Of a stretch of 64,000 bases of DNA, positions 8,323 to 53,112 are shown piece after piece. The notes beneath the pieces are model-generated. The model worked only from the letters and a program-made list of their open reading frames with translations, did no database searches and was not told the DNA's origin. The DNA comes from Adineta vaga (lineage: Eukaryota > Animalia > Rotifera). Both the position numbers and the translations under genes were made by a program. How positions within the stretch are numbered: position 1 is the stretch's first letter; every line of letters starts with the position of its first letter. The DNA lies in the NCBI GenBank assembly GCA_021613535.1, contig CP075495.1, forward strand, positions 16,058,001 through 16,122,000, read 5' to 3'.

Positions 8323-9362
8323 ATGAAGTGGTTTGTCCGCACACCAAAATATGGTACAGTGTGAGGAAAAGAACCATGACAAAAAACATGAAAAAGTTAT
8401 TAGTTTACATAATGATAATTTGATAACTCTTCATCTTCATTATTGAAATTAATGAAAATAAGATTACTACAGGAATCAGAACATTCTCTTATAAACCAAA
8501 ATAAACTCAATTCTTCGGAATAATATTTTCTTATAAACCATAAAGAAATGAATTTTCTTCACGTAATTTTGTTAAATATTCAAATAATTCTAATAACTAT
8601 TTATTTGGATTTCCATCAGTTGTTTCTCTGTTTAACATTTGTTTGAAAGGATTTAATATTAAATAATGAAGATAATCGTGGATAACCATTTGTTGTACAA
8701 TTTGAAAATCCATCTGATGGTTTATTTGATGTCCATACTATTGAACGATTTGAATTATAATCAAGACCGAGTTCTTCTCCAAAAAGAATAATTGTTGTTG
8801 ATGAGCTATCATTAACATTTCGATGATGAGGAAAAAAATGATTTAATTGAAACGAATTTACTCTTCCATTTATTTCATTATAGCTGAGTAATCAAGATTT
8901 TCCATGGAATATTGGTTAAATCATTTGGTTGTGTAAATCTTTTTCATTTGTTAAATATGTTGAATTCGATGGAATATTATATGGAATTAATTCTGTTTAT
9001 CATTTATATGATATTAATTCTTGATTCATCGTTGATTTGTAATGTGTTAGTTCATGTCAATGAAAAATATTTAATTTCCATTTAAATTTGTACTAATGTT
9101 AATTTGTACGATTGATTGATAAGCCAGATGTGATGATATTGTGAACCATATCTATCGATGATGAAGGTTAAACATTGATGAGCTGATTGTTGTAGTAAGA
9201 TGTTGTTGATTGTGAATATTCTTGTAAATGTGATGAGTCACTTCAAGTAGAAAATGTATTTACTAATGAAAAGTTTTACTTAGTAGAATTTGTAGTTGGC
9301 GCTGTTGTTGTCTATTCCATTCAATTTTTCCGTACATATTTGTTTGTTTGTTTTTGTTTTTT

Positions 9363-10862
9363 TTACCATCTAGCGTAGAATTGTTCTCGTGAGAAATAAT
9401 TTATTTTCATTTTTAATTTTGCTTCTTCTTTTTCTTCACTTGATTTAAATCCAATTTTCACCTGACCCCTTCTTCTATCGATGTTTTGGAAGTGGCTGGT
9501 GTATATCTTATCTTCCACCATTTGAGCTCTGATCTTCATATAATCTCACCGATTGTATATTGGACGAATAATGTAATTTTGGAAATTCGGTTGATATTTT
9601 CGTTTCCATTTGAGCTTTTCGTTCTTTTTCTTTTGTTTTTCTTGTTTGATTAATCTTATGGTGGTTGTTTGTTGTTGTGGTTTTGGATCGAATTTTGGTT
9701 TGAGAATTTCGATTAATTCATCTTCACTAATATTAACCATATCATCGATATAATTATTAATGGTTTTAATTCTTTTTGTTGGTTCAGGTTCATCATTTGG
9801 TTCAGGATTAACATTTAGTTCAAGTTCTTGATCATTAATATGTTGTGTTTGTGATGCAAATAATTCAATTTCATCATCACTTACATCTGAAATGCCATCC
9901 TGATAATAATGGTTTGTCGATGTGGTTTTTGGTGTTGAATTTCGATCTATGAATGTTGTTGTTTGTTGTTGATTAGTAATTTGCTGTGCCCGTCCGAGAT
10001 ATATAATCGAATAGATTTCGGTAACCGAGGTACAATCATATGCAGCATAATTTATCAAATCTAATCGAGTTTGTTTTTCTAATTGCATATCATAATATTT
10101 TGTTTGAAATGTTTTCCATCGCCATGTACCTAATTCCCAATCCAAACCACAACCCCATGAATTTCGTGTTAATGATTTGTCGATAAATCGTTTTAATGTC
10201 ATTTCAACGGCTGTTTGTAATGAATATTTGATTTTCTTTGCATTTTCGTCATCATCATCATTATAATCAGCATAACCAGGTGTATCATACGATACTCTGG
10301 TTTTCATTTCACGACTTTCCCTTTCGAGATGCGTGATTTCTTCATCTTGATGATCCTGAAATAAAGCTTGTAAATTTTTTCCTATGATCTTACCTATCTT
10401 CATCCATTCGAATCGATGAAAATCTTTAAATTCATTGCTGATTGCACCCCAGGTGATGATCGTGTCGCCGGAGTTGAAGATGATTGACCATAATTGCTTT
10501 ATTTTGTCCATCATAGATGAATTTGCATCTGGAAAATGGAAAGTTTCGAGCAATAACACTGTTGAATAATCACATGAATGCACCATTTCGATTTGGACCA
10601 ATGGACCTATATTACCAGATTGACTTGATTGTAATTCAGTGTCGATTGTATATCGGTGTGTTTCTTTTGCTCGACCTATCAGTTGTTCAATGATGTGGAT
10701 GATGTTGACGTTTGTTGCTGGACGATATTGAGGATATTGTTCTCGTAATCGTTCATTTTTTTCCATCCTTCTAGCATTTTTCCTTCTGTTTGCTAGCGTT
10801 TTCGATGTTGGTTTTCGAGTTTCATTCCAGTTGTTGTCGTTATTGCATGTATGTCTAGACAT
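9363..10862 (-). pseudogene. ORF3 of the LTR element: DEDDy (RNase D/WRN-like) 3'-5' exonuclease, with one in-frame stop at 9546-9548
   Basis: ExoI YTIDTE, LVQI, WG....E, YSLQTAVEMTLKRFIDKSLTRNSW, ExoIII YAAYD. The frame continues 60 codons past the stop (DYMKIRAQ...QFYARW*). Confidence 0.8.
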
Positions 10863-11422
10863 CTTCGTTTCTAAAATGCACTAAGATTCGCTTAAAGGTT
10901 AGGTTTTTCTTTATTCTATTTTCGTTGGCCTGGTTTTTTTATTCCTGTTTTTCTTTTCTTTTTCTTTCCTTCCTGTCGATTATATATGTATTCGTACATA
11001 TATATGTTCGCGTCTTCGTGTACGCGTATAGATGTGAGTGGCATGACTATATGATCTTGTTTACATCTTTTTCTTTCCTGTTCTGTGATGTGGTGAGATC
11101 GACCGTGTCGTGTTCCTGTAAGGTAATCGACTTCGTCCATCTGAATCATCCGTCGTATCATGTCGTCCGCGCGTGATCGCAATGATATATCGATTAAATG
11201 TTCATATGAAGAGAAAAAAATAGATGTTGCTTATACATATATGATTATGATGTATATATGTCTTTGATAGCCTCATCTTATCAGTGAGAAGGGGAAACCT
11301 ATCTCTCCGATATGAACTGCTAAATCAAATTCAAATATTTTAATCAAATAAGTACAATTGACCATTTGCTTTCGATTAATTCTTATTATAGTCGATTCAC
11401 ACCTTTCCCTATTGGGATGTGT

Positions 11423-14400
11423 TTAATCACATAGATTCCACCGCTCCACTAGTGGAACGATGACATCCATCGTAACTTGTTTTGTTAATGTTGTTTTCTT
11501 CGCATGTTGTACAATGAATGTTTTTCTTCCTAATTGTTCGATAATTCGAAATGGACCTTCGTACCTAACATCGAATTTGTTTCGAAAATTTCTGGTTTTA
11601 ATCAGGACTAAATCATTAATTTGGATTGATAATTCTTGTCGATGTTGATCATATCGAGTCTTATATTGTTGCTGAGATTTTTGAATGTTTTTTCGTGCAT
11701 CATCTGTTAGTTTTTCAAGGTAATTTCGAAGTTTTTCTCCGTGTTCAGTGTCGTTCGTAAGTGAAATAAGTGTCCGTTGTTGATCGAATGGAAGACTAGC
11801 TTGTCGACCGTACATCATTTCAAATGGTGTATGTTTTGTTGTTGCATGTACAGATGTATTGTAATTAAATGTAACAAATTGTAATATTTCATCCCAATCT
11901 GTACGTTGATCATTGCATAATGATGCTATTTTCCCATCCATTGTTGCATTAAAACGTTCAATTTGTCCATTTGTTTGTGGATGATAAGCTGTTGTATATA
12001 AATGAGTGACACCAAGTTTCTTGAGTAAATTGTTCGTTGTTTCTGCTGTGAAGTGAGTACCATTATCAGTTAAAATGCATGTTGATGTTCCATATTTCAA
12101 GATAACATCGTTGGTAAGGAAATCAACTGTTGTTTTTGCTGAACAATCACGCACTGCTTTTGCTATAACGAATTTTGATAGGACGTCTGTTAATGATTGA
12201 TGTATCGATTGTCTCGTCGTGATGTTGGATTTATTGGACCATAAAAGTCCATGCTTAGTCACTTCCATATTCCATCGGGTGGTGGTATTGGTTGTAATTT
12301 GCCTGGTGGTTTTTGACGACGATGATTGTTCTGTGCACATGGTAAACATGAATTTATATGATTTTTAATATCTGCTAACATTGTTGGCCAATACTAACGT
12401 TCTTGTATTTTTCTTGTCGTTTTATCACGACCGAAATGAGCACCGTTACCAGGTGTATCATGATAAATTTTTAAAATATCAGCACGCATCCTCCCTTGCG
12501 GAACGAATGGTACTGTTGATGGAAGTGGTGGATTTTGTTTTCGGAATAATATTCCATCTTGAATTATATATTGTTTGTGTTTCTTCAGATTCATTTTAAT
12601 TCTCTTAACCATGTCATCTTCTTCTTGTTGTTTCATTAAGTTATCCATATCGAACGGAACGATCTTATTCGGATCATCGTTCGATGGATCTTTCGCTTCT
12701 TTCCCGTCTGAGATGAGCTCATTTGGTTTCTGTAATTTTGCTTGAGCTCGTGTAATAGCTGTTATTATCAAAGGTGATGATGTTTCAGTTTGTGTTGATT
12801 TTGTTTCATAACTAATTTTATCATCATTATCTTCTTGTGCCTCTTCCACCGGTGATCGAGATAGATAATCTGCCATGTTGTTTTTCTTTCCTTGTATATG
12901 CTTCACCTTGAAACGATATTCAGCTAATCGTAATCTCCAACGTTCACGTCTTTTGTTCAACTGTTCCTTGTTTGAAAAATTAACTAATGGTGCATGGTCT
13001 GTTTCCAGTATAAATTCATGTCCACGTAAATATTTGTCCCATTTCTCGACAGCTTGAACAATTGCATAACATTCTTGTTCAATTGTGGGCCAGTTAAGTT
13101 GTGTTTTAGTTAATTTCTTGAACATGTATGCTAATGGTCGATCACCCTCTGGAGTAATTTGTAATAGAACCGCACCTATTCCATCGACACATGCATCAGT
13201 TTGTAATTTAAATGGCATATTATCATCAGGTAAATTGAGAATAAGATCAGTTGTTAATATGTGCTTGAGTTAATGGCATGCTGTTCTTCCTTCTTCTGAT
13301 AATTCAAATTTTAATTTCTTGTTTCCTTTCTGTTGCTGTTTTAATGTTGTTGGTGAATACTTATGAAGTGGTGCAGCGATGATGGAGAATTTCGAGATGA
13401 ACTTTCGATAATATTCTGCAGCTTTGACGAATCTAAATGCTTCTTCTGCAGATGTTGGTTCTCGAGCGTCTGCTAAACCACGAATATTTTCGGGATCTGG
13501 TTTAATTGTACCTGCTTTGATAATGTGCCCAAGGAATAATATTTCTGGTTTTGCTATCTCACATTTGACAATGTTTAATTTGAAGTTTACGTCGTTCAAT
13601 AATGAGCATACTTCTTCAATGTGTTGTGCATGTTCAGGAAATGTTCGTGAATATATAATGATGTCATCGATGTATGCTAGCATATGTTTCCACCGATTTG
13701 GACCTAATATTTGATTTACAATTCGTTGAAATGTTGGTGGTCCATTGGTTAATCCTTGTGGTAATACTTTAAACTGAAAATGACCATCCTGACTAGAAAA
13801 TGCTGTTTTCGGTCGATCTGATTTGTCTAATGGTACTTGTAAATAACCTGCCTTGAAATCAAATTTGCTGAAATATGTTGCTTTTGTTAATTGATCATAA
13901 ATATCATCAATTCTTGGCAATGGAAACGCATCTTTTGTTGTAATTTGATTGAGTCGACGGTAATCAACACAAAATCTTGTTGTTCCATCTTTCTTCTTTA
14001 CTAATACTACAGGGGAAGACCATGGAGATGTTGAATGTTCACTAATATCATTTTGCAATAATTTTTGTGTTTCTTCACCGAGAACTTCTTGATCTTTATT
14101 CGATTTTCGGTATGGTGGTGTATGTATTGGTCGATGAGTTCCAGTATCAATTGCATTTTTCAAAGTTATGTCGATTTTTGACGGTTGTCTAATGTCAAAT
14201 AATTTGCCATATTTCCAAAGGATAGTTGTAGTTTGATTTCGTTGTTTATCATTAGCGATGTGTTCGGTTAGTTTTTTAATTTGTTCTCGTATTTCATCTG
14301 GATAACATTGTTCCCTAAGATGGTGAAATAAATCATTTTTTGTGACAAATCGTTGCGAACAACTTCGACACCGATGTTCACTGTCTTCTACTGTTGATGT

Positions 14401-15273
14401 TCGTAGGTTTCCTGATTGTGGATCTTGCATTTCGTTCGCTTCTTTTCCTTGCGGAATGCGTTCTTGAGAATAATTTGATGGTATAATAAGACTAACTGCA
14501 GTTGATACTTGTGTGACCACACCAATCTTCGTTCCTTCAGAAAGCGTTTGTTGTCGATTTGTTGCATTGATGATACCAATATTAACTTTTCCATCTTTGA
14601 CATTAAGAAGTGTACATGCTGTAAATAATGCTTTATGTTGTAGTTGAGGATTTGGTTCAAATAATGCATCGGATAGATTTCTTTGTTGTAGTTGTGCTTC
14701 GACAACATGTTCTGAAAATGGAAATAGTGTAATGCAGATAACCAGAGTTGCTGAAAAATTCAAAAGTGGTGGTTTAATAAAAGGAGTTGATACTTCTCTG
14801 CCTTGGTTTTTGATCATAATACGCTTTTCTGGTGTAAGAATATAAACATTGTTTGCTTGAATCCAATCGCTACTAAGTATTAAATTTGTGACGAGATCTG
14901 TTGCTACATCAGCTGTAACTTGTGTTGTAATTCCATTAATGTTGATGAATAATGATACTTCGCCGATGACGTTCACTGCTGAGCAACTTGCTGATAAATG
15001 ATTTTTTGTTCGTGGTATAAATTGTTTGTATGGGATCTTGTTTAATAGACGTTTGTGAATTATTGTGATGGCCGATCCTGTATCGATTAGTGCTTCTTGT
15101 GGAGTATTATTGCATAAGATTTTGACGAAGATTGGATTGTATGTTTCCGTTGTTGTTGCTGGTGTTGTAAGTGATGATGTTGATGTTGTTGTCGATGATG
15201 ATGACTTTTGAACTCCACAAGGATCGTCACCATCAAACAATCCCCTTATTAGAAAAAATAACGTTGAGGACAA
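11423..15273 (-). pseudogene. pol: pol (protease, RT, RNase H, integrase) with nonsense and frameshift lesions
   Basis: PR LIDTGS; RT RFCVDYRRLN...YIDD; RNase H LQTDAC...IEQEC...ETDH; IN HHCC, LTDNG, PQTNGQIER, YEGPF. Stops at 13270-13272 and 12394-12396, frameshift near 12200. Confidence 0.92.
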
Positions 15274-15967
15274 TCACGTATTCGATGATTTGACTGTCCA
15301 CATCTAAAGCACCCATTGTCCTTCTTGTAAAAACATTGCATCGTTGAATGGTTCGTTCGATTGCAGACTAGATATGGTTTCGATTGTTGAGATGTATTTC
15401 GCCGATCAGTTTGTCGTTGTCGTATTGTATTCGAACGTCGTTCATACCGTTGATATTGCTGATGATGGTTGTTGGATTGTTGCTACAGGTAATGTCGGTT
15501 CGAAATATGGTTTCTGTACTGCTGCTCGTGGTGGTGTATTACGTTGTTGAATTCGTCGTTGTATATGTTCTTCTTCCCTTGCCACCAACAGCCATTCTTC
15601 AGGTTTAGAGATGTTTACTTCATTTCGAATTAATTGTTCCTTTAATGAATACTTGACACCTGCTTTTAATACCGTAATAATTTGTTTTTCAGTGATCAGT
15701 CCACATGCTTTTCGATATTTGCGCATAACCGTGTCATAAAATGCTATAGTTGATTGATCTTCTTCTTGTCGAAGCTGAAAGAATTCTTGTACTAATTGAC
15801 CATCTGATGCAAATGTTTTGAATCGGTCTCATAATGCTTCTTCTGCTTCCTTCCAATCACCAAATGATGTTAAATTTCCTTGATACCATCGTAATGCTGA
15901 TTCGATTAATTTTCCCATCGTCAATAATATCTTTGTTTTATCTTGCATTTGCATTAGCGAGAATATT

Positions 15968-18113
15968 TGTTGTCCGATTCTTCTTTGCTGTGTGATTTGT
16001 ATTATAGTTATCTATACAAGAAATGTAGGTCGGTCAGTAGAAGAAAGGGTATGGTTGTGATCTATGACTAATTTCATAGAGTGAAGCCAAAAGAACATGA
16101 GAAAGAGGAATAGAAATACAGACTAATACATAATAAAATACACAGATTGTTTTGGATTCAGATAATATAGAAATGAATATAAATGAGACGAATTTCTACG
16201 GTAAGGTTGATGAATATATTAATTCATTAAGTGAAAAGTTTCGTGTGAAATCGGTAATAAAACAAGATGTGTATAATACTATTCAACAATGTTTAGCATT
16301 ACCGAGAGGTGTAGCAAATAGTTTATATTCTGCAACGTACACGCATTGGGTGAAACATATGTTCATATTAATCAAAATTGCTGGTATTGATATAGTGGCT
16401 TGTATCAAAACCAAAAAGCCTGTTTGTATTTATGAAAATTTTTATACCATAATTAATGAAGCACATATCAATATTTCACATGGTGGTCGAGAAAAAACAA
16501 TGTATGAATTAAATGTTCATTACTCGTGGATTCCTCGACCTTGCATTGCGATATTCTTGAAGCAATGTGTTGCGTGTCAAACACGCAAACCAATTAAGCA
16601 CCATGTGATAACAAAACCAATAATCTCTTTAGGTGTGATGACCAGACTTCAAATAGACCTTATCGATATGCGCACCAGACCCGACAAAATATCATCTGAT
16701 TTAACTTATTGTTGGATATTAAATTGCGTCGATCACTTCAGTGAATTCTCTTGGGGTTATTCACTGAAGAACAAATCAGCTGTTGAAGTAGTAACAAAAA
16801 TACGTGAATTATGTTTTACATTTGGACCACCCAAAATATTGCATAGCGATAACGGACGTGAATTTGTTTCTTCAGTTATCTTTGAATTGAAAGTACTTTT
16901 TCCTGATTTAGTTTTCATCCATGGTAGGCCGAGACATCCACAAAGCCAAGGTTGAGTTGAGAGAGCAAATGGGGTTTTGTGTGATGCTCTCGGCAAATGG
17001 TTGTCCACGAATAATACTTCAAGTTGGTCGTCTGGTCTATTACCGGTTATATATGGAATTAATACAAGAATGTCTACTGTTACTAAAACAAGTCCTTACG
17101 AAGTAATGTTCGGTCAATCACCTCGTTCTGACAGTGATTTCTGGAAATTGATTCGTGATAGTGGAATTGATGATGAAGAAGATTTACCTACACCTATTGA
17201 TGATGAAGAAGATGATTCTTCTGTATCCATTGATGTTAATACAATTAATTTCAATCAACCCATCGATGATGAAATTGTCGCTCTTGTTAATCAATTATCC
17301 GATGATGCTTCTTCTTCAATTGATACACAATTAACATTAAAACCAACAGCATATGTTCCTATATCGACTCCAACAAAACATGCATTGATTCGAACAGCTG
17401 CTTCAAATCACTACATGGCAAGTGCTAGTAAGAAGATGAAATTGTATGAAGATAGTTTGGTTGAAATGGCTACTAATTATAATGTGAATGATTGTGTTGG
17501 TATCGAAATACATTCAGTGGATCGTACAAACACAGATCCTAAATATTTACCATGTGTCATTGTTGAAAAGTTGTTACAAAATAATATTCATTTATTTAAG
17601 TTAATTTGTCAATATGGAGTTTTGACAAATACATTCGAAGCTGCACAGTTTGTTAATATAAAAGATGCTTGTTCAATCGAATTGAGAAATGTGGTTATTG
17701 GTAAGTTAAAACCAATTACTATTATTGAAGCGTCAAGACTTTACTCACGGGGCTCGACAACTGGTCGTACATGCAATTGCAAAGGTCAATGTGGAACAAA
17801 AACATGTTCTTGCAGAAAAGAAAATGTTTTCTGTTCTACCAAATGTCATTCGAAGAGAGGTGGATGTTTGAATATGGAATAAACAAGTTACAAATCATAT
17901 AACGTGTTCATTAGAATTCTTCATGAAATAAAACATTTTTTATAATTAATTCTCTCTTCTTTTCTTATAGAGAGAATTTCGATTTTGTCTAGTCAAAATT
18001 AGAATTGTAACTTTGCCTAACAATTCATTCAGTCAAAATTGACATTTCAATTCTGCCTAGTCAGAACTGAAATTTCAATTTTGTCTGGTCAAATTTCAAT
18101 TTTGCCCACAACA
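15968..18113 (+). mobile_element. Ginger2/TDD-like integrase DNA transposon inserted antisense into gag
   Basis: TGTTGT...ACAACA termini, palindromic subterminal repeats (TTTCAATTTTGTCTAGTCAAAATTGA-like) at ~17975-18105, and gag coding sequence on both sides. Confidence 0.75.
16173..17882 (+). pseudogene. KRBA2/SCAND3-like rve integrase with HHCC finger and C-terminal CXC domain; single in-frame TGA at 16953-16955
   Basis: H..HGGREKT...CVAC; QIDLID, HSDNGREF, PQSQG*VER; CNCKGQCGTKTCSCRKENVFCSTKCH. ORFs 16152-16955 and 16977-17882 are in the same frame. Confidence 0.85.
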
Positions 18114-18687
18114 TAACCATTCATCAATATCCAGTTCATTAGATTCTCCCGAATACTCATTAATTTTCTTCATAGCTTCCTGTTGACTGGAATGTAATTG
18201 TCGAAGCTCCATCGAGTCCACATCGTTCGAGGTATTTTTCGTTGCTCCCATCTCCATCGAGGTGTTTTTCGTCATCATATCGTCCGAGTGCGTTTCGTTC
18301 ATCGAGGTATTGCTTAATGCGCTGTCTTTCGTCATGTTGTATATAGACAAATTTTTACGTGTGTTTTTCCGACGTGTTCGTTTTGATGATTATGTTATTA
18401 TTTCGTATGGATAAAGGTTTGCACTGCTTCTCTTTGTTGTTCTTCGAATGCCGTCCACCGTGTTCGTATAGATGTTTTTAAAGGATGAAAGAAAATAAGA
18501 TATGTGAAGAATACTATACCTTCTTCGACTGAATGATTTCAGTACTTATAATTAATAATTGTACTTAATGAATTCACTTGACTCTCTTTCCGTCACGGAT
18601 GAGATAATAATCACTCTTTCCTGATAAAGGATGAGTTCAAAAAGACCCGGTACTTGATTCTTTTTCGATGGAATAAATAGAAAAAGA

Positions 18688-18702
18688 CTGGTCACGGCAC
18701 CA
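18688..18702 (-). promoter_or_regulatory. Primer-binding site, tRNA-His
   Basis: TGGTGCCGTGACCAG, 2 nt after the 5' LTR. Complementary to the 3' end of invertebrate tRNA-His(GUG) (...CTGGTCACGGCACCA). Confidence 0.85.
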
Positions 18703-18704
18703 AA

Positions 18705-18859
18705 TGTTAGCTCGCTTGTCGAGCGACTTTTCGTTTATTCAGAATTAATCATATCAAAAAGAGAAAATACATCACCTTATATAGAAAGAAGAGAGAGAGA
18801 GAGAGAAAGAGAGAGAACAAAGACGAACGTAAATCTGTCGAGGGTCTATGTCGTTAACA
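18705..18859 (-). repeat. 5' LTR (155 bp)
   Basis: Direct repeat of 8156-8310, adjacent to the PBS and followed by TSD GTCAC. Confidence 0.95.
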
Positions 18860-19959
18860 GTCACATATCCCCGATCTGAGGGATATGTGTCACTGCTGAT
18901 TTTATGTGTCATAATCATTCTTGAAGTCGTTTAATAAAGATCAATCCACACCCACTCTTTAAAAAAGTACCTCCCCCTTTCCGGCGTTTCTAAAAAACGA
19001 CCGGTCGAAAATTCTTGAAACTTTCTGCGTAGATACGTCTCGAATAGTACAGCAATAGTTCTTCTGGACACAAATTTGCCAGACCTCACCATCATGAAGT
19101 TCTATAGACCACAAGCTCAAAAACTGGCCTAACATTACAAAAGTTTCCCCCCTCGCAGATTCACAGATTTCATCCGTTTGAGCTGAAATTTTTACTCTAG
19201 TTAGCAGGATCCAATCGGTGGATGCTTTTACTTTTTGAAAAATCTCAAATAGTTTAGGCTGTAGAAGCAAAATATTGATCACGAGGAAATCTCTAGGTTT
19301 TTCGGGTTCTAAAAATTTTGTGAAGTCTGTCAAATCTGATTGGTAGGAAGTATCGACAAACAAAATCACCTTCAACCACCCTCAAGATTCGGATTCAGGA
19401 CCATCGATTAGCTATGGTCCACTAGCTCTCACGTTAAAAACGATTTCCATTTCTCACATTAGTACATAAAAGATATTGCAGTTGACTGTTATCAGCGCAT
19501 TCAATCTCCTTGTTGATTCAACTGTTTTATGCTCACAGAATACAAGTGCTATAGCTTCAGAAAATACAGTTATTTCGAATCTGTGTGCTGTGTTCAGTTA
19601 AAAATATAGGTAACGGGTGAAGTGAATATTTCTATTAATCAAACTTGGTCGTGTTCACAATACATCCGTAGCTGGTGTTTGTGCCTATAATAAAGTCAAG
19701 ATGTATATAACTAATTTATCACCATGGGTGCGTCAAAACGTATACAAAATGTACTCACAAAAAAGACGAAATACGACAATTCTATCATTTCTAAGGTTTT
19801 CGAGCGAGTACACACCTCGATATTAATACATGCATTCTTTCCTATCAGAATGAAAGATATCGTTTCATTCCAAGTACAATTTGTACTCGTATCCGCGCAC
19901 CCCTCTTTATCAGATATCATTGTTAATTCTTCTGTTGTATATCGATATTCATGACTTAT

Positions 19960-20897
19960 CCCAGGACAGACGTTTCGGACCCTTCCACACAGTTACCGTT
20001 AGATACTGACAGAACCCAACTAAAAATCTCGGCAGAATGGAAGCAGTATTCCAGACTGAAAAATCTCAGGCACGGATACGAAAGATTCCTGACAAAACTG
20101 ACGACCGACTTCCTTAAAGAACCCTACCGAAACCAACTATGGAAAACAAAACATAGACCACACTGTAAAAAAAAGCGTCGAATTACAAATCCTCGAAAAG
20201 GATTGATAGTCGCGACATGAATCCTTTTTAGGTTTATGAACGTAAGGTACCCTCTCATAAACCCTTGTTTTCATGGACGTTGGTAAGGGTTTCTTATACG
20301 TTGCACTTTCATAAATCCTTTAAGGTGGATGAGCATTCATTTACCCTTTAAGGGTATACGAAAGTGCAGCGTATAAAATACCCTTCTTATAATTTATAAG
20401 GTTAACAAACCTATAAAAAGAGTTGATTATTCTGCGCTTTTTTTTACAGTGCACTTCAGTACTTTGTCACTTATCGTATCACAAAGGAAGCTTTAGCGAA
20501 CGCGCAAATGAATCATCCGGAATCCAACCACTCGGACTTTTCCGTTCCATTCCAACCTTTTCCGGCTAGGTCCGACAGAATACAAACGGTTCCTAAAGGC
20601 GAAACCGAATAAAGCGATCTCTCCTATTCCCTTAGCCGACGCTCAGAAACTATCGGTACCAACAAAATCTAACAAAATCCTGCGTAAAGTAACCATAGAT
20701 TGACCCCAATCAGACTCAGGTATATTCTTAAATTTAGATATGAATGATAAAAAATCGGTTTTCAATCCTTTCAAGAATTCTTAACAGAATTCGGTGAATA
20801 CATGTACAAGCTTGGATAGGAGGGATGAAGATGAAATTGGGAATGACTATTCCTTAATAGGATCTGTTGGTTTCCGGGCCGGATTTTCGGACCTGGG
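19960..20897. mobile_element. Non-autonomous element with CCCAGG...CCTGGG ends, hosting a CACTG MITE
   Basis: Short TIR with TAT on both sides, and repeated TCGGA/TCCGA motifs internally. Confidence 0.55.
20161..20451. mobile_element. CACTG-ended (CMC/EnSpm-type) MITE; mirror copy at 41039-41329
   Basis: TIR CACTGTAAAAAAAAGCG / CGCTTTTTTTTACAGTG with 2-bp TSD CA. Confidence 0.85.
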
Positions 20898-23875
20898 TAT
20901 CTATTGTTACCGCTAATACTTCTTGATCGTGTCCTAGAACAATAAATGTAACTGCTACTAATGTTAATGAGTCAGTATCTTATTGTGCTTTGAATTTGAT
21001 GAACATTCATTATATTAATTAAACATTCGTATACAATTCTATTCAAGTGTATCCTAAAGAACTCAATGTAAGTAACAGGGAGGATAGCAATTTTGTCAAT
21101 GACTGCCCAAGTGTGCCTATCTCGCTTGATGCTAACAATGCGATGGTTTCGACAGATACATCAAAATGCTCGTCGACTGTTAACGTAATGGCTACGAATG
21201 GAGCGTGATTAATGTTTGTGCTGTTAGAATAAATCATGCAGTTGCATCATTTAATGGCGCAATATAGTACAGAGGAACCAAGGGAAAAGAGCGGAAACCT
21301 GAATGGCATGAATTTTGAAAGATGGAGCAGTTATTGGAACTTATTGTTTTGGAATTTATGGGAATTTCTGAATAACTACCACGTCTTTTATAAGGAAAAT
21401 GACTTACTGAGGATGAGAGGGCGAGAACGAGGAGTAGAATTAATGGTGAGGGTGCACTGAAATATTGATGTAGCTAATAAGTGCAAATAAATACTCTGTA
21501 GAGAATAAATCCTAATAAAAGAAATCCTAAGGACTCCTCTTCTTGCACTTACCTTAGGACGTTCATTCTCGATCTTGTTTCTGACACTCATACGCACCCA
21601 CACGCCTATTTATCTTTATTCTTCACAATCCCACTCATTCGAATTTACTATTACACATGCATAAAAAACTAGAGACATGCTCTATATGTAAGTTAATGTG
21701 TTTGTTTTTTGCAAGTTTTGTGGCATCAACTGTAGTATGAATGTCATCTCCATGTGGATGTTGTGTATACTCTCGATTTCTTGTAAATATTGTATTATCA
21801 GATGATGTAATGAGACAAGTGTATGAAACATCACATATGTTGCGTTCATTAGCCTATGTGGACAGGGTGCATAATGTTTGAAATAATGTCAGACCAGTAG
21901 TCTAATTTATTTGCAGAAACAGGTTTGATTGGTACGATGCATTGAGAGATGACAGTCACAGATGAATGGCTTTATAATTACCCTAGAAAATATTTTATGG
22001 TAAAGTTTATTCTATTATCTGTGTGAATAAATATAATTAGGGTAAGGAGGTGAATAAACGGACCTTTTTTCATATCATATAAGCACGCGAAACTGCTCTA
22101 CTGTGATTGAAATGAGATGTATATAGATCTACACAAAATATTTCACTTATTAGAATTCTGTCTCTACATTGTATGACTAATGTCATATGGTTAGAAATCG
22201 TTCTGTTTGTACAGAAAATTCAGGTTGGATATTATATCCATCTTTCAGTTGAAGTATCGGAATTTCAAGAGTATAAAACAATCAGACCAAACAATTTATT
22301 TTTGTCTGAACTATCCAATAAAAGGTAATCTAGGTAACTGAGAGCATACATTTTATTCAAGCCTTTCGGGGGCGATGTGATTTTGAAAAGTTTGCAAAGA
22401 GATTTACGAAACGGATTTCATACGTTGAATTAATCATTCTTAATTAGCACATTTCCATGCGTACTCTTTCATGAAAAAGATGAGTGTAAATATCTGCGAA
22501 AAATCTGTTACGCCAAAACATGTTCCAAAAACATTTTATTTTTATTGCTGACGAACGTTCGGAAAATAGAGTATTCGCCATTGGTGATCAACATCGTCAT
22601 TAAAGGGCTAACGAAGATTCGACTTTATACTGCGGATTATACAAAATTATTCCGATCCTTATAACAATTTAAAACGTTTTTATGCAAAACGAATTACTAT
22701 TGGCTTTGTCGAAAGGAAATCCGAGGAACCTTCACGAAATTTGCGGGTTGGCGTAAAGAACTTTTGTGCATTTTCTTTTTATTGTGGTTACATAGAAAGA
22801 TTCTTCTAAAATACGCGTGCAACAAGATAGAAGAAAATACTTCAGCTTTTATGATGTTGTTAAAATATTATGATTACTATTGCAAATAAGAATAGTAAAA
22901 GTCTAGAAATGTCAGAGTAACTAAATGTACGATAATGTGTAGAGCGAGATGTTAATTTTCCAGTTCCTTTTATACATGTTTATGTTTTCTAACAGCTCTT
23001 ATTATTCACTTTAGTGTGAAGATTCAGCTTATGAAAGGATAGAAGTATCGACAAATGAACAATTGTGCGTTGCTTGTTGGAACATTTCATTAGCTCGAAA
23101 TTTCAAATAATAAGAGGTTAAGTATGCCTGTGTCCATACCAAGGTGCACTTTTACTTACCTGCATATGAGTACAGAGATGAAAAAGTTAAATATTGAAAC
23201 TTTTTCATACTCCATGTGATAAAAAATACTTCTCATCGTATTGTTACTTTAGAGAACCATGTTGATAGGTCTACCGTACAGAAAAGGACACAAATATAGC
23301 ACAAGCTGATTGAAAACCTCTGTTCTTCCTTCCTCCTTTTGCAAAACGACAAATAAACTTCTTAGGTACAAGTTCTAATTATAAACACCGTTGCCATATC
23401 ATAACATAATTTAACAGATATGGTTGAACATATCTTTATGTAGTAGAACCATCGTTTAACCATATTCCCGTATATGACATAATATCAATACTTTACAAAT
23501 CGGCCTACTGCAACTCCGTTCCTTGCTCCAAAGAACGTATCTCGTAAAGTCAGTGTATTCATCCTTATTCTTCTTGTTATTTTATGAATGTGGAGTATAT
23601 TAGAACAAGATGCAATAAACTACAACGCTCTACCGCATTATACACAATTTCTAGTCGACTATTTAAGAGTAGCATCCACGTTTTTCCTTCTGAATATTAT
23701 ATTAGGATATCTTGAAATGCTGGTTTACCTGGTTTTAGTCGTTATTGAGATGAAGTTGACTGCCGTTTCAATTGTATCTTCAAACCATGTGAGGCAGTTG
23801 CTATGTTTTTGTTCGCTGATATCCATGGAAAGCACAAATCGAAAACCAAACTGTTCTGTTCAATTGTTTAGACGC

Positions 23876-24069
23876 TGTTAGTGCAAGAGCCTTAGTTCCA
23901 CCAACACTAGTGCCTCGACAGTGTTCTACCCGTTTTTGATTAATGTTAGTACAAGAGCCTTAGTTCCACCAACACTAGTGCCTCGACAGTGTTCTACCCG
24001 TTTTTGATTAATGTTAGTGCAAGAGCCTTAGTTCCACCAACACTAGTGCCTCGACAGTGTTCTACCCGT
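23876..24069. repeat. 68-bp tandem repeat x ~2.9; mirror copy at 37422-37615
   Basis: Units start at 23876, 23944 and 24012 and are nearly identical, with no unique spacers. Confidence 0.95.
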
Positions 24070-26945: not shown

Positions 26946-26983
26946 ACTTCTGACAAAAAAATTTCATTTCGTTTGGTTTAAAG

Positions 26984-27149: not shown

Positions 27150-27153
27150 GTTG

Positions 27154-34500: not shown

Positions 34501-37500
34501 ACCTACTTTAAACCAAACGAAATGAAATTTTTTTGTCAGAAGTTAAACTATTCTTTCTCTTGCAACTTTTCAAAATAATGTGTTTTTCGTAAACTGTAGA
34601 GCTTTCCACGCGGCATCCTTTGCCATATTTTATTTGTTTAATAACATGAAGCAAGTGGCATGAAAACGAGACGCAACTGTTCAGCCCATTTTTTTACACC
34701 TTTTCATACGCTTCTAATTTCATCTTTTTTGGAATATGTTTAATAACGTGTGAGGGTTCAATCATACACGGTATTGTAGAGAATTCCAAACACTATCTTT
34801 TGATAAAAACAAAGCTCTTTGATCACATGAATGATATAGGAGAAATATTCGGAATATTCCGAGATCCATTCGTTCTGGAACAGCCATTATTTTCGGATGT
34901 GTGCAGTCAGGATTTGGATTGTGGCCAATGCAAATCTTTGGTGAGAAACATCCTATCGAGTTCAAGTTGAAATGGGTTTGTAGTATTCGTCAAGACAAAT
35001 ATAGAATATCTCCGTTTTAGGATGCTATCATATACAAATGTATCAAAACAAATAATTCTAGATTACGGAAAAATCAATCTTTTCGGAATGAAATCTTCTG
35101 TAGAAATACGAATTGATATCTTTTTTCTGACGCTATAATATTCTATTCAGAGTTACGTCCCAAGACACGGTTTCGAAATATAATTTTTGTTGAAGTTTTC
35201 AGTTGCTCTTAGTCGTTCTCAAGGTAAGAATCATCGTTTTACCGGATTCAATGTATGAATACCGTTCTTTCAGTTTCATGGTCTCCACACTTTACTCAAT
35301 CTAGTATTGTACAGAACGTAAAGTTTTTTATCATCATGTCTAAATATCTACTGTACACCTTACTCGCTGCTCTTCGATTACTTATTCACGCTTCGTCGAT
35401 TTTTACCGTCGTTTTTTATGAAGAATCGACGCATAGAATAAAATAGGGACCATTACATTTCATATACGGCTAGAGAGTAGTGTGCAGTAAAATAATATGA
35501 CGCTGCATTATGATCAATATGAGAAGGCCTTTACAAACAAGGACTTGATTTTGATATTGGTAAAACATTAGAGAAAGAGTTTAAATCAACCATACTCTGT
35601 ATTTTTTCTCAACTCTAGGTTGGTTAAGTGATATAAATGTTTAAATCATATTACACTTATGGCAGAATAATATATCATATTCAATTCGTCCTTGCTGTTA
35701 AAAAAACGTAAGTAATTTATTTATGCAGTTTTAAAGTATTGTGCACTATATACGGTAATACTTGATCAAATGTTGTAGAATATTCTGATCGAATATTATA
35801 ATATTCATATTAATCCTTTCCTGCTTTTGCGCGCTTTAACATCCACTTTCTACAAAATTTGGTTCTTTAGAAATAACGAGGGAGAGTCACTCACTGCCCA
35901 GTCGCTTTTCAGTGGATACTTTGGCCAAAGGTAAGAGATTCTATGTCTAGAATAATCCTATGAGGATATGAGCTTTCTACCAACTTTCTACCCCTTGTCA
36001 ATATTGAGCAAAACATTAAATAACGGAATTTTCAACTGAAATTTGGGCCGTATATAGGTCTAACCATCAATAAAGTATTTTGAAAGTTTCGGCCGAAAAA
36101 AGTATTCCTTCATTGAGAAATTGGATTTTGAAGTAATCTGATAATTTGTATATATTATACTGCAAGTGATTATCTTCTTGTAAATCAATATCTCCATAAG
36201 GGAACATTTTTTGCGACTGAAACTTTCAGAATAGTCTAATGATGATTGGACCTATCTATGGTTCGAATTTCAGTTGAAAACTCCGTTATTTAGTTTTTTC
36301 TTCAATGTGGAAAAAGGGCGAAAAGTAGGTAGAAAGCCCATACCTCGGCGCCAAAGCACTAGTGTTCCATATCCTAGTAGGATTGTTCTACTCTTATAGC
36401 CCTATACCTATGGGTAAAATATTAATGAAAAATAGTTGGACGTTTAGTGACCATCTCTGCTAATAAACATTTAAAGCTCAATTATGTACACATATAAAGC
36501 CAATGAATTGTACTTTCGACAGGCTCCAAGTTGATATGAAATTGGTCCTTAAATATTTCTTAGTTCAAAAAGAACCAGATTTATGTAAGATGGGCGTCAT
36601 AGCGCCCATAGGGCAGGAAAGGATTATTATTTTTATGCACCTGTTTATGGACGTTAATGCTAACGACTTAAAAAGCTGTTCATTTGTTATTGCGTTGGAG
36701 TTTTGAAGATTCGATACATTCTGTTGAGACGTGAAAAACCTGGAACATTTAGTTGTCTCAAGCCTTCCTCTCACAGTTATGAGCATTTTGCGAGGTAAAC
36801 TCACGAACTTATCAGTCGCTTTTGGGTTGATATTCTAGTTATAGGCAAGAGACCTTAAGACTCGAATAGTCCCAGGAAATTTCCGAACGCTAAGTCTTTT
36901 GTGTGGAGTCATGAAATTTTAACCGCTTTTTCATTGTTGAGCGAGAACGTTTTTCAGCGCAATTGCTTTGGGTCTAAAATGTGAAAGTCACATAGCCTAT
37001 TTGCGCTTCTAATGGATTCTGTTTGTAATCGAGGATCGGGGAGAGGTGTGGGCCAAATTCATCGACCTAAAACTTACACTCGTTAATTTGTTTTTCAACT
37101 GAAAACATATGGTTCCACAAAATATCAATCCAAAACCGACTGGATAGTTGGTGACCGTTCTCTATCAGTCAATTTTTATGATAAAGCATCGTATCAACTT
37201 AAAATTGCATTACTTTCTTTTATAGGTAAACTGATATCTGACCAATCTTAAACGAAGCGTAAATTTCACAATTTAATACGAAACTTGACACTTAAGAAAG
37301 AAGGATTATCCATTTATATTTCCAACGAATGGGTGACTGCACAACTTCGACAACCATTTCTGTTCGAATCAGTATTAGCTTAAATAAACTTGCTTTTAAA
37401 GTGGCAAGGTATAACCAAACCACGGGTAGAACACTGTCGAGGCACTAGTGTTGGTGGAACTAAGGCTCTTGCACTAACATTAATCAAAAACGGGTAGAAC

Positions 37501-40500
37501 ACTGTCGAGGCACTAGTGTTGGTGGAACTAAGGCTCTTGCACTAACATTAATCAAAAACGGGTAGAACACTGTCGAGGCACTAGTGTTGGTGGAACTAAG
37601 GCTCTTGCACTAACAGCGTCTAAACAATTGAACAGAACAGTTTGGTTTTCGATTTGTGCTTTCCATGGATATCAGCGAACAAAAACATAGCAACTGCCTC
37701 ACATGGTTTGAAGATACAATTGAAACGGCAGTCAACTTCATCTCAATAACGACTAAAACCAGGTAAACCAGCATTTCAAGATATCCTAATATAATATTCA
37801 GAAGGAAAAACGTGGATGCTACTCTTAAATAGTCGACTAGAAATTGTGTATAATGCGGTAGAGCGTTGTAGTTTATTGCATCTTGTTCTAATATACTCCA
37901 CATTCATAAAATAACAAGAAGAATAAGGATGAATACACTGACTTTACGAGATACGTTCTTTGGAGCAAGGAACGGAGTTGCAGTAGGCCGATTTGTAAAG
38001 TATTGATATTATGTCATATACGGGAATATGGTTAAACGATGGTTCTACTACATAAAGATATGTTCAACCATATCTGTTAAATTATGTTATGATATGGCAA
38101 CGGTGTTTATAATTAGAACTTGTACCTAAGAAGTTTATTTGTCGTTTTGCAAAAGGAGGAAGGAAGAACAGAGGTTTTCAATCAGCTTGTGCTATATTTG
38201 TGTCCTTTTCTGTACGGTAGACCTATCAACATGGTTCTCTAAAGTAACAATACGATGAGAAGTATTTTTATCACATGGAGTATGAAAAAGTTTCAATATT
38301 TAACTTTTTCATCTCTGTACTCATATGCAGGTAAGTAAAAGTGCACCTTGGTATGGACACAGGCATACTTAACCTCTTATTATTTGAAATTTCGAGCTAA
38401 TGAAATGTTCCAACAAGCAACGCACAATTGTTCATTTGTCGATACTTCTATCCTTTCATAAGCTGAATCTTCACACTAAAGTGAATAATAAGAGCTGTTA
38501 GAAAACATAAACATGTATAAAAGGAACTGGAAAATTAACATCTCGCTCTACACATTATCGTACATTTAGTTACTCTGACATTTCTAGACTTTTACTATTC
38601 TTATTTGCAATAGTAATCATAATATTTTAACAACATCATAAAAGCTGAAGTATTTTCTTCTATCTTGTTGCACGCGTATTTTAGAAGAATCTTTCTATGT
38701 AACCACAATAAAAAGAAAATGCACAAAAGTTCTTTACGCCAACCCGCAAATTTCGTGAAGGTTCCTCGGATTTCCTTTCGACAAAGCCAATAGTAATTCG
38801 TTTTGCATAAAAACGTTTTAAATTGTTATAAGGATCGGAATAATTTTGTATAATCCGCAGTATAAAGTCGAATCTTCGTTAGCCCTTTAATGACGATGTT
38901 GATCACCAATGGCGAATACTCTATTTTCCGAACGTTCGTCAGCAATAAAAATAAAATGTTTTTGGAACATGTTTTGGCGTAACAGATTTTTCGCAGATAT
39001 TTACACTCATCTTTTTCATGAAAGAGTACGCATGGAAATGTGCTAATTAAGAATGATTAATTCAACGTATGAAATCCGTTTCGTAAATCTCTTTGCAAAC
39101 TTTTCAAAATCACATCGCCCCCGAAAGGCTTGAATAAAATGTATGCTCTCAGTTACCTAGATTACCTTTTATTGGATAGTTCAGACAAAAATAAATTGTT
39201 TGGTCTGATTGTTTTATACTCTTGAAATTCCGATACTTCAACTGAAAGATGGATATAATATCCAACCTGAATTTTCTGTACAAACAGAACGATTTCTAAC
39301 CATATGACATTAGTCATACAATGTAGAGACAGAATTCTAATAAGTGAAATATTTTGTGTAGATCTATATACATCTCATTTCAATCACAGTAGAGCAGTTT
39401 CGCGTGCTTATATGATATGAAAAAAGGTCCGTTTATTCACCTCCTTACCCTAATTATATTTATTCACACAGATAATAGAATAAACTTTACCATAAAATAT
39501 TTTCTAGGGTAATTATAAAGCCATTCATCTGTGACTGTCATCTCTCAATGCATCGTACCAATCAAACCTGTTTCTGCAAATAAATTAGACTACTGGTCTG
39601 ACATTATTTCAAACATTATGCACCCTGTCCACATAGGCTAATGAACGCAACATATGTGATGTTTCATACACTTGTCTCATTACATCATCTGATAATACAA
39701 TATTTACAAGAAATCGAGAGTATACACAACATCCACATGGAGATGACATTCATACTACAGTTGATGCCACAAAACTTGCAAAAAACAAACACATTAACTT
39801 ACATATAGAGCATGTCTCTAGTTTTTTATGCATGTGTAATAGTAAATTCGAATGAGTGGGATTGTGAAGAATAAAGATAAATAGGCGTGTGGGTGCGTAT
39901 GAGTGTCAGAAACAAGATCGAGAATGAACGTCCTAAGGTAAGTGCAAGAAGAGGAGTCCTTAGGATTTCTTTTATTAGGATTTATTCTCTACAGAGTATT
40001 TATTTGCACTTATTAGCTACATCAATATTTCAGTGCACCCTCACCATTAATTCTACTCCTCGTTCTCGCCCTCTCATCCTCAGTAAGTCATTTTCCTTAT
40101 AAAAGACGTGGTAGTTATTCAGAAATTCCCATAAATTCCAAAACAATAAGTTCCAATAACTGCTCCATCTTTCAAAATTCATGCCATTCAGGTTTCCGCT
40201 CTTTTCCCTTGGTTCCTCTGTACTATATTGCGCCATTAAATGATGCAACTGCATGATTTATTCTAACAGCACAAACATTAATCACGCTCCATTCGTAGCC
40301 ATTACGTTAACAGTCGACGAGCATTTTGATGTATCTGTCGAAACCATCGCATTGTTAGCATCAAGCGAGATAGGCACACTTGGGCAGTCATTGACAAAAT
40401 TGCTATCCTCCCTGTTACTTACATTGAGTTCTTTAGGATACACTTGAATAGAATTGTATACGAATGTTTAATTAATATAATGAATGTTCATCAAATTCAA

Positions 40501-42629
40501 AGCACAATAAGATACTGACTCATTAACATTAGTAGCAGTTACATTTATTGTTCTAGGACACGATCAAGAAGTATTAGCGGTAACAATAGATACCCAGGTC
40601 CGAAAATCCGGCCCGGAAACCAACAGATCCTATTAAGGAATAGTCATTCCCAATTTCATCTTCATCCCTCCTATCCAAGCTTGTACATGTATTCACCGAA
40701 TTCTGTTAAGAATTCTTGAAAGGATTGAAAACCGATTTTTTATCATTCATATCTAAATTTAAGAATATACCTGAGTCTGATTGGGGTCAATCTATGGTTA
40801 CTTTACGCAGGATTTTGTTAGATTTTGTTGGTACCGATAGTTTCTGAGCGTCGGCTAAGGGAATAGGAGAGATCGCTTTATTCGGTTTCGCCTTTAGGAA
40901 CCGTTTGTATTCTGTCGGACCTAGCCGGAAAAGGTTGGAATGGAACGGAAAAGTCCGAGTGGTTGGATTCCGGATGATTCATTTGCGCGTTCGCTAAAGC
41001 TTCCTTTGTGATACGATAAGTGACAAAGTACTGAAGTGCACTGTAAAAAAAAGCGCAGAATAATCAACTCTTTTTATAGGTTTGTTAACCTTATAAATTA
41101 TAAGAAGGGTATTTTATACGCTGCACTTTCGTATACCCTTAAAGGGTAAATGAATGCTCATCCACCTTAAAGGATTTATGAAAGTGCAACGTATAAGAAA
41201 CCCTTACCAACGTCCATGAAAACAAGGGTTTATGAGAGGGTACCTTACGTTCATAAACCTAAAAAGGATTCATGTCGCGACTATCAATCCTTTTCGAGGA
41301 TTTGTAATTCGACGCTTTTTTTTACAGTGTGGTCTATGTTTTGTTTTCCATAGTTGGTTTCGGTAGGGTTCTTTAGGAAGTCGGTCGTCAGTTTTGTCAG
41401 GAATCTTTCGTATCCGTGCCTGAGATTTTTCAGTCTGGAATACTGCTTCCATTCTGCCGAGATTTTTAGTTGGGTTCTGTCAGTATCTAACGGTAACTGT
41501 GTGGAAGGGTCCGAAACGTCTGTCCTGGGATAAGTCATGAATATCGATATACAACAGAAGAATTAACAATGATATCTGATAAAGAGGGGTGCGCGGATAC
41601 GAGTACAAATTGTACTTGGAATGAAACGATATCTTTCATTCTGATAGGAAAGAATGCATGTATTAATATCGAGGTGTGTACTCGCTCGAAAACCTTAGAA
41701 ATGATAGAATTGTCGTATTTCGTCTTTTTTTGTGAGTACATTTTGTATACGTTTTGACGCACCCATGGTGATAAATTAGTTATATACATCTTGACTTTAT
41801 TATAGGCACAAACACCAGCTACGGATGTATTGTGAACACGACCAAGTTTGATTAATAGAAATATTCACTTCACCCGTTACCTATATTTTTAACTGAACAC
41901 AGCACACAGATTCGAAATAACTGTATTTTCTGAAGCTATAGCACTTGTATTCTGTGAGCATAAAACAGTTGAATCAACAAGGAGATTGAATGCGCTGATA
42001 ACAGTCAACTGCAATATCTTTTATGTACTAATGTGAGAAATGGAAATCGTTTTAACGTGAGAGCTAGTGGACCATAGCTAATCGATGGTCCTGAATCCGA
42101 ATCTTGAGGGTGGTTGAAGGTGATTTTGTTTGTCGATACTTCCTACCAATCAGATTTGACAGACTTCACAAAATTTTTAGAACCCGAAAAACCTAGAGAT
42201 TTCCTCGTGATCAATATTTTGCTTCTACAGCCTAAACTATTTGAGATTTTTCAAAAAGTAAAAGCATCCACCGATTGGATCCTGCTAACTAGAGTAAAAA
42301 TTTCAGCTCAAACGGATGAAATCTGTGAATCTGCGAGGGGAGAAACTTTTGTAATGTTAGGCCAGTTTTTGAGCTTGTGGTCTATAGAACTTCATGATGG
42401 TGAGGTCTGGCAAATTTGTGTCCAGAAGAACTATTGCTGTACTATTCGAGACGTATCTACGCAGAAAGTTTCAAGAATTTTCGACCGGTCGTTTTTTAGA
42501 AACGCCGGAAAGGGGGAGGTACTTTTTTAAAGAGTGGGTGTGGATTGATCTTTATTAAACGACTTCAAGAATGATTATGACACATAAAATCAGCAGTGAC
42601 ACATATCCCTCAGATCGGGGATATGTGAC

Positions 42630-51600: not shown

Positions 51601-53112
51601 CAAGAACTTGAACTAAATGTTAATCCTGAACCAAATGATGAACAACAAAAAAGAATTAAAACCATTAATAATTATATCGATGATATGGTTAATATTAGTG
51701 AAGATGAATTAATCGAAATTCTCAAACCAAAATTCGATCCAAAACCACAACAACAAACAACCACCATAAGATTAATCAAACAAGAAAAACAAAAGAAAAA
51801 GAACGAAAAGCTCAAATGGAAACGAAAATATCAACCGAATTTCCAAAATTACATTATTCGTCCAATATACAATCGGTAAGATTATATGAAGATCAGAGCT
51901 CAAATGGTGGAAGATAAGATATACACCAGCCACTTCCAAAACATCGATAGAAGAAGGGGTCAGGTGAAAATTGGATTTAGAACAAGTGAAGAAAAAGAAG
52001 AAGCAAAATTAAAAATGAAAATAAATTATTTCTCACGAGAACAATTCTACGCTAGATGGTAAAAAAAAACAAAAACAAACAAACAAATATGTACGGAAAA
52101 ACAAATGGAAAAATTGAATGGAATAGACAACAACAGCGCCAACTACAAATTCTACTAAGTAAAATTTTTCATTAGTAAATACATTTTCTACTTGAAGTGA
52201 CTCATCACATTTACAAGAATATTCACAATCAACAACATCTTACTACAACAATCAGCTCATCAATGTTTAACCTTCATCATCGATAGATATGGTTCACAAT
52301 ATCATCACATCTATTTATCAATCAATCGTACAAATTAACATTAGTACAAATTTAAATGGAAATTAAATATTTTTCATTGACATGAACTAACACATTACAA
52401 ATCAACGATGAATCAAGAATTAATATCATATAAATGATAAACAGAATTAATTCCATATAATATTCCATCGAATTCAACATATTTAACAAATGAAAAGATT
52501 TACACAACCAAATGATTTAACCAATATTCCATGGAAAATCTTGATTACTCAGCTATAATGAAATAAATGGAAGAGTAAATTCGTTTCAATTAAATCATTT
52601 TTTTCCTCATCATCGAAATGTTAATGATAGCTCATCAACAACAATTATTCTTTTGGAGAAGAACTCGGTCTTGATTATAATTCAAATCGTTCAATAGTAT
52701 GGAAATCAAATAAACCATCAGATGGATTTTCAAATTGTACAACAAATGGTTAATCCACGATTATCTTCATTATTTAATATTAAATCATTTCAAACAAATG
52801 TTAAACAGAGAAACAACTGATGGAAATCCAAATAAATAGTTATTAGAATTATTTGAATATTTAACAAAAATTACGTGAAGAAAATTCATTTCTTTATGGT
52901 TTATAAGAAAATATTATTCCGAAGAATTGAGTTTATTTTGGTTTATAAGAGAATGTTCTGATTCCTGTAGTAATCTTATTTTCATTAATTTCAATAATGA
53001 AGATGAAGAGTTATCAAATTATCATTATGTAAACTAATAACTTTTTCATGTTTTTGTCATGGTTCTTTTCCTCACACTGTACCATATTTTGGTGTGCGGA
53101 CAAACCACTTCA
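42630..53112 (+). mobile_element. Mirror copy of the Ty3/Gypsy element (5' LTR 42630-42772, PBS, gag, pol ~46200-50010, ORF3 50573-52062), ending at the gap just before the PPT and 3' LTR
   Basis: Shares the nonsense positions of the left copy and has extra 1-bp deletions and a 29-bp deletion. Confidence 0.93.
43364..45505 (-). mobile_element. Mirror copy of the Ginger2-like element
   Basis: Same termini and same TGA; extra frameshifts near 43815-43840. Confidence 0.85.

Follow-up and report, generated by a model that had tools for sequence, protein, structure and literature searches.

A 45-kb palindrome centred on a Tc1/mariner-type transposon near the end of Adineta vaga chromosome 2: a candidate product of fold-back break repair

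Palindromes were central to the 2013 claim of an ameiotic genome structure in the bdelloid rotifer Adineta vaga, and were dismissed in 2021. A 64,000-nucleotide stretch of chromosome 2 (contig CP075495.1, positions 16,058,001 to 16,122,000; hereafter the window) carries a palindrome in a newer assembly of the same species, with a transposon at its centre, and raises the question of whether it is a chromosomal structure left by the repair of a broken DNA end or a product of sequencing and assembly. Positions below are window coordinates unless preceded by a chromosome label (C2 being chromosome 2), and refer to an AV20-type assembly of 100.8 Mb in six pieces. In the AV20 pipeline, Oxford Nanopore reads were assembled with NextDenovo, passed through purge_dups, polished by HyPo on the basis of both Illumina and PacBio data, and scaffolded by instaGRAAL (PMC8494291). 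The centre of the palindrome lies ~186 kb from the end of C2, which is 16,274,841 bp long.

A mirror-image duplication of 45 kb is present in the assembly. Comparison of the left and right halves by blastn returned one minus-strand high-scoring segment pair, 8324-30333 against 53112-31156, with 22,033 columns at 99.03% identity, 114 mismatches and 43 gap openings, in agreement with the original prediction that 8324-30333 recurs inverted at 31156-53112 around an 822-bp spacer. A repeat scan resolved 15 collinear, gap-free blocks between the arms, each 98-100% identical, and left a single-copy, asymmetric centre of 822 bp (30334-31155). Differences between the arms were unevenly spread: 0-2 over 20.1-23.9 kb, ~63 substitutions at 24-26.3 kb, and a mixture of substitutions and indels at 8.3-19.8 kb. 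Only one difference was found over 26,265-29,950, which bears out the near identity claimed for the inner ~4 kb. The long terminal repeats (LTRs) of the enclosed retroelement, said to be ~3% apart, were measured at 96.8% identity, and the duplication does postdate the nested insertions, as had been proposed, because both arms share the retroelement, its nested 2.1-kb insert and ~124 differences from a related copy on C1. Telomere-repeat seams were sought at the palindrome edges and none was found, the sole near-match being at 2013-2024.

By its sequence, the element at the centre is a transposon of the Tc1/mariner superfamily. Its transposase matched the catalytic domain of Sleeping Beauty SB100X (E=5.6e-12) and, weakly, Pfam DDE_3 (E=8e-4, under the curated cut-off); the spacing between the second and third acidic catalytic residues was 32 when counted by eye, compared with 37 in maT (DD37D). 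Three other copies were found, at C3:2.84 Mb, C1:17.47 Mb and C2:15.15 Mb, all 99% identical, free of indels and with the same order of terminal inverted repeat (TIR), core and TIR. All four copies were bounded by a TA target duplication and lay in unrelated flanking sequence. Relatives of ~70% identity are ~1.3 kb long with inverted repeats of only ~75-85 nt, so the form with long repeats appears to be a derived but mobile family; given four indel-free copies at 99% and an intact open reading frame (ORF) of 339 codons, this family was probably active recently.

These copies change the interpretation of the axis. As the identical TIR-core-TIR arrangement occurs at three other loci, the axis of the palindrome is an inverted repeat that already existed. 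The original prediction had placed a fold-back junction at 31155/31156, which proved to be an ordinary part of all four copies, with no novel junction there. The idea that the transposon had been rebuilt with two 3' ends was likewise rejected, since the structure at the three other loci makes it a family-wide trait; for the same reason, reads continuing into a normal maT 5' TIR, which had been put forward as a possible refutation of the palindrome, have no bearing on this element. The sole abnormality at the centre is that the right flank of the transposon repeats its left flank in reverse complement, beginning at the TA. Variants private to this copy comprised a mirrored pair at repeat position 44 and a cluster of five substitutions. 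Because the position-44 variant sits in both inverted repeats, the copied region extends into the transposon itself. The cluster (31092-31197) may be either a repair scar or leftover nanopore errors at the onset of the second arm.

The sequence interrupted by the transposon shows what its right flank should have been. The segment 29022-29950 has a 96% identical paralog on C5 (C5:375069-376244), and homology between the two ends exactly at the TA of the transposon. The C5 paralog runs unbroken past the equivalent of the insertion site into an ORF of 269 codons that encodes a FLYWCH zinc finger, on which basis we class the element as MULE-like. On C5, the element spans C5:375069-377625 with the FLYWCH ORF at its N-terminal side; apart from the truncated copy in the window, nothing in the genome is related to it. 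Of the C5 continuation, the first 1.38 kb (C5:376245-377625) had no second copy in the 100.8-Mb assembly, so the C2 copy is without its 5' half anywhere in the assembly. Such an absence is what a fold-back with deletion of the distal (terminal) flank predicts, but the missing 5' half could equally occupy the gap beyond the right arm or a purged contig.

We find the evidence evenly balanced on whether the palindrome is a real fold-back inverted duplication, seeded by inverted repeats and carried on the chromosome in a fixed or heterozygous state. The fuller account, that a recently active transposon with 383-bp TIRs gave rise, through fold-back repair of a broken chromosome, to a germline palindrome spanning 45 kb or more of a bdelloid subtelomere, is offered tentatively, as a proposal a little short of even. 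Before the event, the transposon was inserted at a TA within the MULE-like element. A double-strand break, situated either beyond the transposon on its distal side or within the right inverted repeat, would then have been resected until both inverted repeats lay on one single strand. Annealing of the repeats within that strand would form a 383-bp stem and an 822-nt loop, from which the 3' end could prime synthesis back along its own chromosome. The expected outcome would be an inverted duplication with at least 21.6 kb per arm, in which the intact transposon forms a spacer of normal copy number and what originally lay on the distal side, namely the 5' half of the MULE-like element, is lost. 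By analogy with yeast, the outer end may have been closed by a secondary, repeat-mediated join inside the multi-copy LTR retroelement, a join that assemblers would also find difficult to resolve. The fold-back origin suggested in the original prediction fits, and better than was apparent then, since the fold-back point is a pre-existing 383-bp inverted repeat around an 822-bp loop; it did not, however, create a new junction at 31155/31156.

The position of the axis bears on how the molecule arose. A pre-existing inverted repeat would not be expected at the axis of a random chimera, and an inverted repeat of 383 bp is probably too short to count as a valid overlap for an assembler. A join made by the assembler through the inverted repeats alone was rejected by reasoning, as the sequences to be joined would share 383 bp, or 1.6 kb with two-sided overhangs. 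With such a join unlikely and a technical fold-back excluded (see below), at least one physical molecule carrying the transposon between mirrored flanks must have existed. The features of the locus are collected in Table 1.

Table 1. Features of the palindrome and its surroundings, in window coordinates.
Feature	Position	Strand	Details
Complete LTR retroelement	8156-18859	-	155-bp LTRs at 8156-8310 and 18705-18859; GTCAC duplication; reverse transcriptase, RNase H and integrase ORFs
Left arm, ending with the TA duplication of the central transposon	8324-29950	+	Well polished; indel/substitution ratio 0.04-0.08 against outgroup copies
Nested insert in LTR retroelement, 2,147 bp	15966-18112		
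Copy of ~7-kb subtelomeric repeat family	19934-26506	+	Third copy at C2:16143075-16149695, 96%
Divergent patch, 351 bp	24950-25300	+	Left arm 89-90% to right arm; right arm 97% to downstream paralog
MULE-like element, 3' part, interrupted by transposon	29022-29950	-	5' half missing from assembly
Central Tc1/mariner-type transposon, 1,588 bp	29951-31538	-	TA on both sides; 3 other copies, 99%, 0 gaps, unrelated flanks
Left TIR, 383 bp	29951-30333	+	Contains 3' end of transposase gene; 2 positions differ from right repeat
Intact transposase ORF, 339 codons	30082-31098	-	From translation; SB100X match; weak Pfam DDE_3
Single-copy core of transposon (palindrome spacer or loop), 822 bp	30334-31155	.	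Collinear with three other copies throughout
Five private substitutions in 105 bp	31092-31197	.	Boundary of core and right TIR
Right TIR, 383 bp	31156-31538	-	Private variant at repeat position 44 mirrored in both repeats
Right arm, inverted copy of left arm	31539-53112	-	Inner ~15 kb clean; outer ~7-11 kb rich in 1-nt indels
Run of 23 N	53113-53135	.	Starts on the base after the right arm
Post-gap sequence, middle of a ~7-kb subtelomeric repeat copy	53136-54208	+	Start equivalent to left-arm 26461; 89% to C2:16149650-16150429

Several observations weigh against a real fold-back. Differences between the arms were polarised with two outgroups, the retroelement copy on C1 (96%) and the downstream paralog of the ~7-kb repeat at C2:16143075-16149695 (96%). 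This assigned 26 indel events to the right arm and seven to the left; 20 of the 26 were deletions, mainly of a single base and often in homopolymers. Against the C1 copy, single-base indels numbered 19 in the right arm and one in the left (Fisher p=1e-5). The ratio of indels to substitutions between the arms was 0.56 within the retroelement, compared with 0.04-0.08 between well-assembled copies, and the four transposon copies showed no indels. The retroelement ORFs, of 667, 438, 308 and 274 codons in the left arm, were more fragmented in the right (497, 220, 181, 125 and 109 codons). The outer right arm thus looks like unpolished nanopore consensus, and accurate reads evidently did not polish it. 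Nanopore reads that cross inverted duplications are known to have lower accuracy and to skip bases in the second arm (PMC7229812). In addition, the right arm stops exactly at the sole N run in 144 kb, as would the contig tail from a single long read, whereas a real palindrome of finite length should supply good reads from its distal side and, with them, a resolved outer junction. Patchy substitution divergence of ~0.5% is also expected of two haplotypes at a single-copy locus, and the authors of the assembly deemed the earlier A. vaga palindromes artefacts. The original prediction had already cautioned that the structure might be an artefact, and the gap at the end of the arm and the error-rich outer arm strengthen that caution.

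The inner right arm differs in character. Over 34983-41555 it showed 63 substitutions relative to the left arm, with a natural indel ratio of 0.08, and it includes the counterpart of the 351-bp divergent patch. Counterparts of the patch lie at 36190-36540 and at C2:16148113-16148465; the left arm is ~10% off both, with many adjacent double substitutions, and no closer donor for the left-arm sequence (24950-25300) was present in the assembly. These 63 substitutions at a natural ratio, together with the patch, indicate that two real versions of the arm sequence exist in the data, and the two versions could be either two genomic arms or two haplotypes.

At the outer edge, 53113-53135 was the only N run in C2:16028001-16172000. 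The sequence on each side of it breaks off in the middle of a repeat, which points to genuine contig ends, and since the gap interrupts with both edges inside repeats, the outer junction of the right arm is not visible. A full-length copy of the ~7-kb repeat beyond the gap would mean that the gap conceals more than 6 kb. Post-gap sequence was considered as the true right flank of the transposon and rejected, because it is a fragment from the middle of the ~7-kb family and not the 5' half of the MULE-like element. The palindrome edge at 8324 is no natural boundary either, as the left 168 bp of the retroelement, including the left LTR, fall outside the palindrome; a polypurine tract lies immediately to the left of 8324.

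The most serious alternative, which we judge a real though lesser prospect, is that the right arm is a tail at the end of a contig, built from one or a few nanopore reads of rare fold-back molecules that were taken as the longest overlap. Such molecules could be somatic, subclonal or derived from hairpin-capped broken ends, and would have formed at the same inverted repeats; the true genome would then hold one arm, followed by the transposon and the missing MULE-like 5' half, the contig having ended with the read and its true continuation residing in a small contig dropped by haplotig purging or scaffolding. An arm that stops exactly at the N run, with repeats at both gap edges, would be expected from such a tail, as would deletion-rich, homopolymer-type errors in the outer arm when the other repeat copies compared, the four-copy transposon among them, have few or no 1-nt indels, given that nanopore quality drops and bases are missed in the second arm of inverted duplications (PMC7229812). 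A pipeline of NextDenovo, purge_dups, HyPo and instaGRAAL that yields only six scaffolds also offers a route by which the continuation could have been lost. However, this explanation still requires a molecule that was physically folded back around the transposon, which should be rare within ~125x coverage, and a single read should lose out to the true path into the MULE-like 5' half, which would be well covered. Moreover, at least 1.38 kb of the true flank is absent from the assembly, and what follows the gap is other material. That the two arms are two haplotypes, through a head-to-head mis-join or a heterozygous inversion broken at the transposon, is improbable. Divergence of ~0.5% in patches, with kilobases of identity between them, resembles heterozygosity with tracts of loss of heterozygosity, and the older A. 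vaga palindromes were ascribed to mis-scaffolded haplotypes. Against this, the centre is contiguous and free of N, which leaves no scaffolding join there, the only gap being at the outer end; the two orientations share just the 383-bp repeats, or the 1.6-kb element with overhangs, probably too little for a long-read overlap; and scaffolding by Hi-C bins cannot duplicate sequence.

Two further explanations concern the axis itself. Fold-back reads are common and typically lie at contig ends, which would favour a technical origin through a nanopore template-complement read, a missed PacBio adapter or an amplification chimera, with the axis at a fragment end. Such an origin nevertheless predicts no spacer or an adapter only, with either the core or the whole element mirrored, whereas the observed core occurs once, is asymmetric and aligns collinearly with three other copies; nor would it account for inner arms that differ by 63 real-looking substitutions at a natural indel ratio and by a 351-bp patch of 89-90% identity. 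The plain fold-back (template-complement) read that the original prediction listed among its alternatives can accordingly be excluded, as the core is intact over all 822 bp and keeps the order of the other copies, and we assign a technical origin next to no probability. Aberrant transposition, between sister chromatids or with reversed ends as in maize Ac/Ds, could have used the identical ends of the element, whose recent activity is probable given the equivalence of those ends, its intact transposase and the near identity of its four copies. On reasoning, such an event would leave the axis with no element or with two and create target duplications elsewhere, but a single intact element was observed at the axis, flanked on each side by the original TA in mirror image; aberrant transposition was rejected on this geometry and is very improbable.

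Fold-back repair at pre-existing inverted repeats has precedents in other eukaryotes, which the proposed mechanism matches closely. Among 21 sequenced human fold-back junctions, spacers ranged from 766 to 70,466 bp, and three of the 21 fell within inverted Alu or L1 elements sharing homology of ~300 bp (PMC3907307). In yeast, hairpins with long stems and large loops give rise to foldback inversions; secondary rearrangements, most of them homology-mediated, stabilise these afterwards (PMC7467729). The A. vaga locus has inverted arms like those of human chromosomes with an inverted duplication and terminal deletion (Hermetz 2014, PMC3907307) and of yeast foldback inversions (Li 2020, PMC7467729). 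It shares with the human fold-backs a short, asymmetric, single-copy spacer (here 822 bp) and inverted homology at the spacer edge (here 383 bp, compared with ~300 bp of Alu or L1). Loss of the distal flank, as in the human and yeast cases, would be a further likeness, but a gap or purged contig could also account for the absence of the counterpart from the A. vaga assembly. Unlike in either system, the inverted homology is provided by the two terminal repeats of one intact transposon rather than by separate repeats, and the visible arms are only 22 kb, cut by the gap before any outer junction. Large palindromes started by short inverted repeats are also found in Tetrahymena ribosomal DNA (rDNA) and in mammalian gene amplification. 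They have in common with the proposed mechanism a break beside an inverted repeat, intrastrand annealing and a spacer of the repeat that is kept at the centre, but they are programmed, or selected during amplification, whereas the arms in A. vaga consist of transposable elements and so give no hint of selection.

Other palindromes offer partial parallels. In sex-chromosome palindromes, the arms are kept alike by arm-to-arm gene conversion. Long identical stretches alternate with diverged patches in those palindromes as they do here, but no genes are maintained in the A. vaga arms. The palindromes of the 2013 A. vaga draft, judged artefacts by Simion 2021 (PMC8494291), were of a gene-order type and were attributed to the scaffolding of phased haplotypes; they come from the same species and raise the same question of artefact. 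In contrast to them, the present palindrome is contiguous through its centre, comes from the new assembly and has a transposon in the middle. With the hairpin or fold-back tails of contigs (Spealman 2020, PMC7229812) it shares a location at a contig end and a second arm rich in missed bases; typical technical fold-backs are, however, without a natural spacer, and here the spacer is a complete transposon core.

The consequences depend on which explanation holds. If the fold-back is real, the locus is a base-resolved case of break repair reshaping bdelloid subtelomeres, in which the inverted repeats of a transposon served as the fold-back site. The chromosome-level genome of A. vaga would in that case hold genuine large palindromes after all, and transposons with long TIRs would act as built-in hotspots of fold-back in an animal for which surviving massive DNA breakage is routine. 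If the palindrome is an artefact, reference chromosome 2 contains a 22-kb false duplication and a hidden gap, probably of several kb or more, and correction is needed before any work on structural variants or copy number.

The remaining observations concern the repeats that make up the arms and the sequence on either side of them. The target duplication of the LTR retroelement, GTCAC, was read at 8151-8155 and 18860-18864. The 96% copy on chromosome 1 (C1:14116891-14127982) has a 1,034-codon ORF and a 2.4-kb insertion of its own. Over 9843-11993, it is ~1.0-1.35% from either arm, with the arms 1.07% apart. The right arm as a hybrid with this C1 copy was also considered and rejected, since the ~124 differences from C1 are common to both arms. 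The ~7-kb repeat family (19934-26982 in the window; C2:16143075-16150429) has further copies at C1:0.25, 0.55 and 17.35 Mb and at C4:14.88 and 14.94 Mb. The family is confined to regions near chromosome ends, with copies 78-96% identical, and the repeat holds a 68-bp tandem repeat (23876-24079) and an internal inverted repeat of ~160 bp. Past the gap, a 465-codon ORF (57103-58500) had no Pfam match. The single-copy left flank (2000-5700) contains pieces of a cytochrome P450 gene (Pfam p450, ORF 4151-4657) and a 116-bp direct repeat at 2077-2192 and 5528-5643, the two copies of which are 83% identical.

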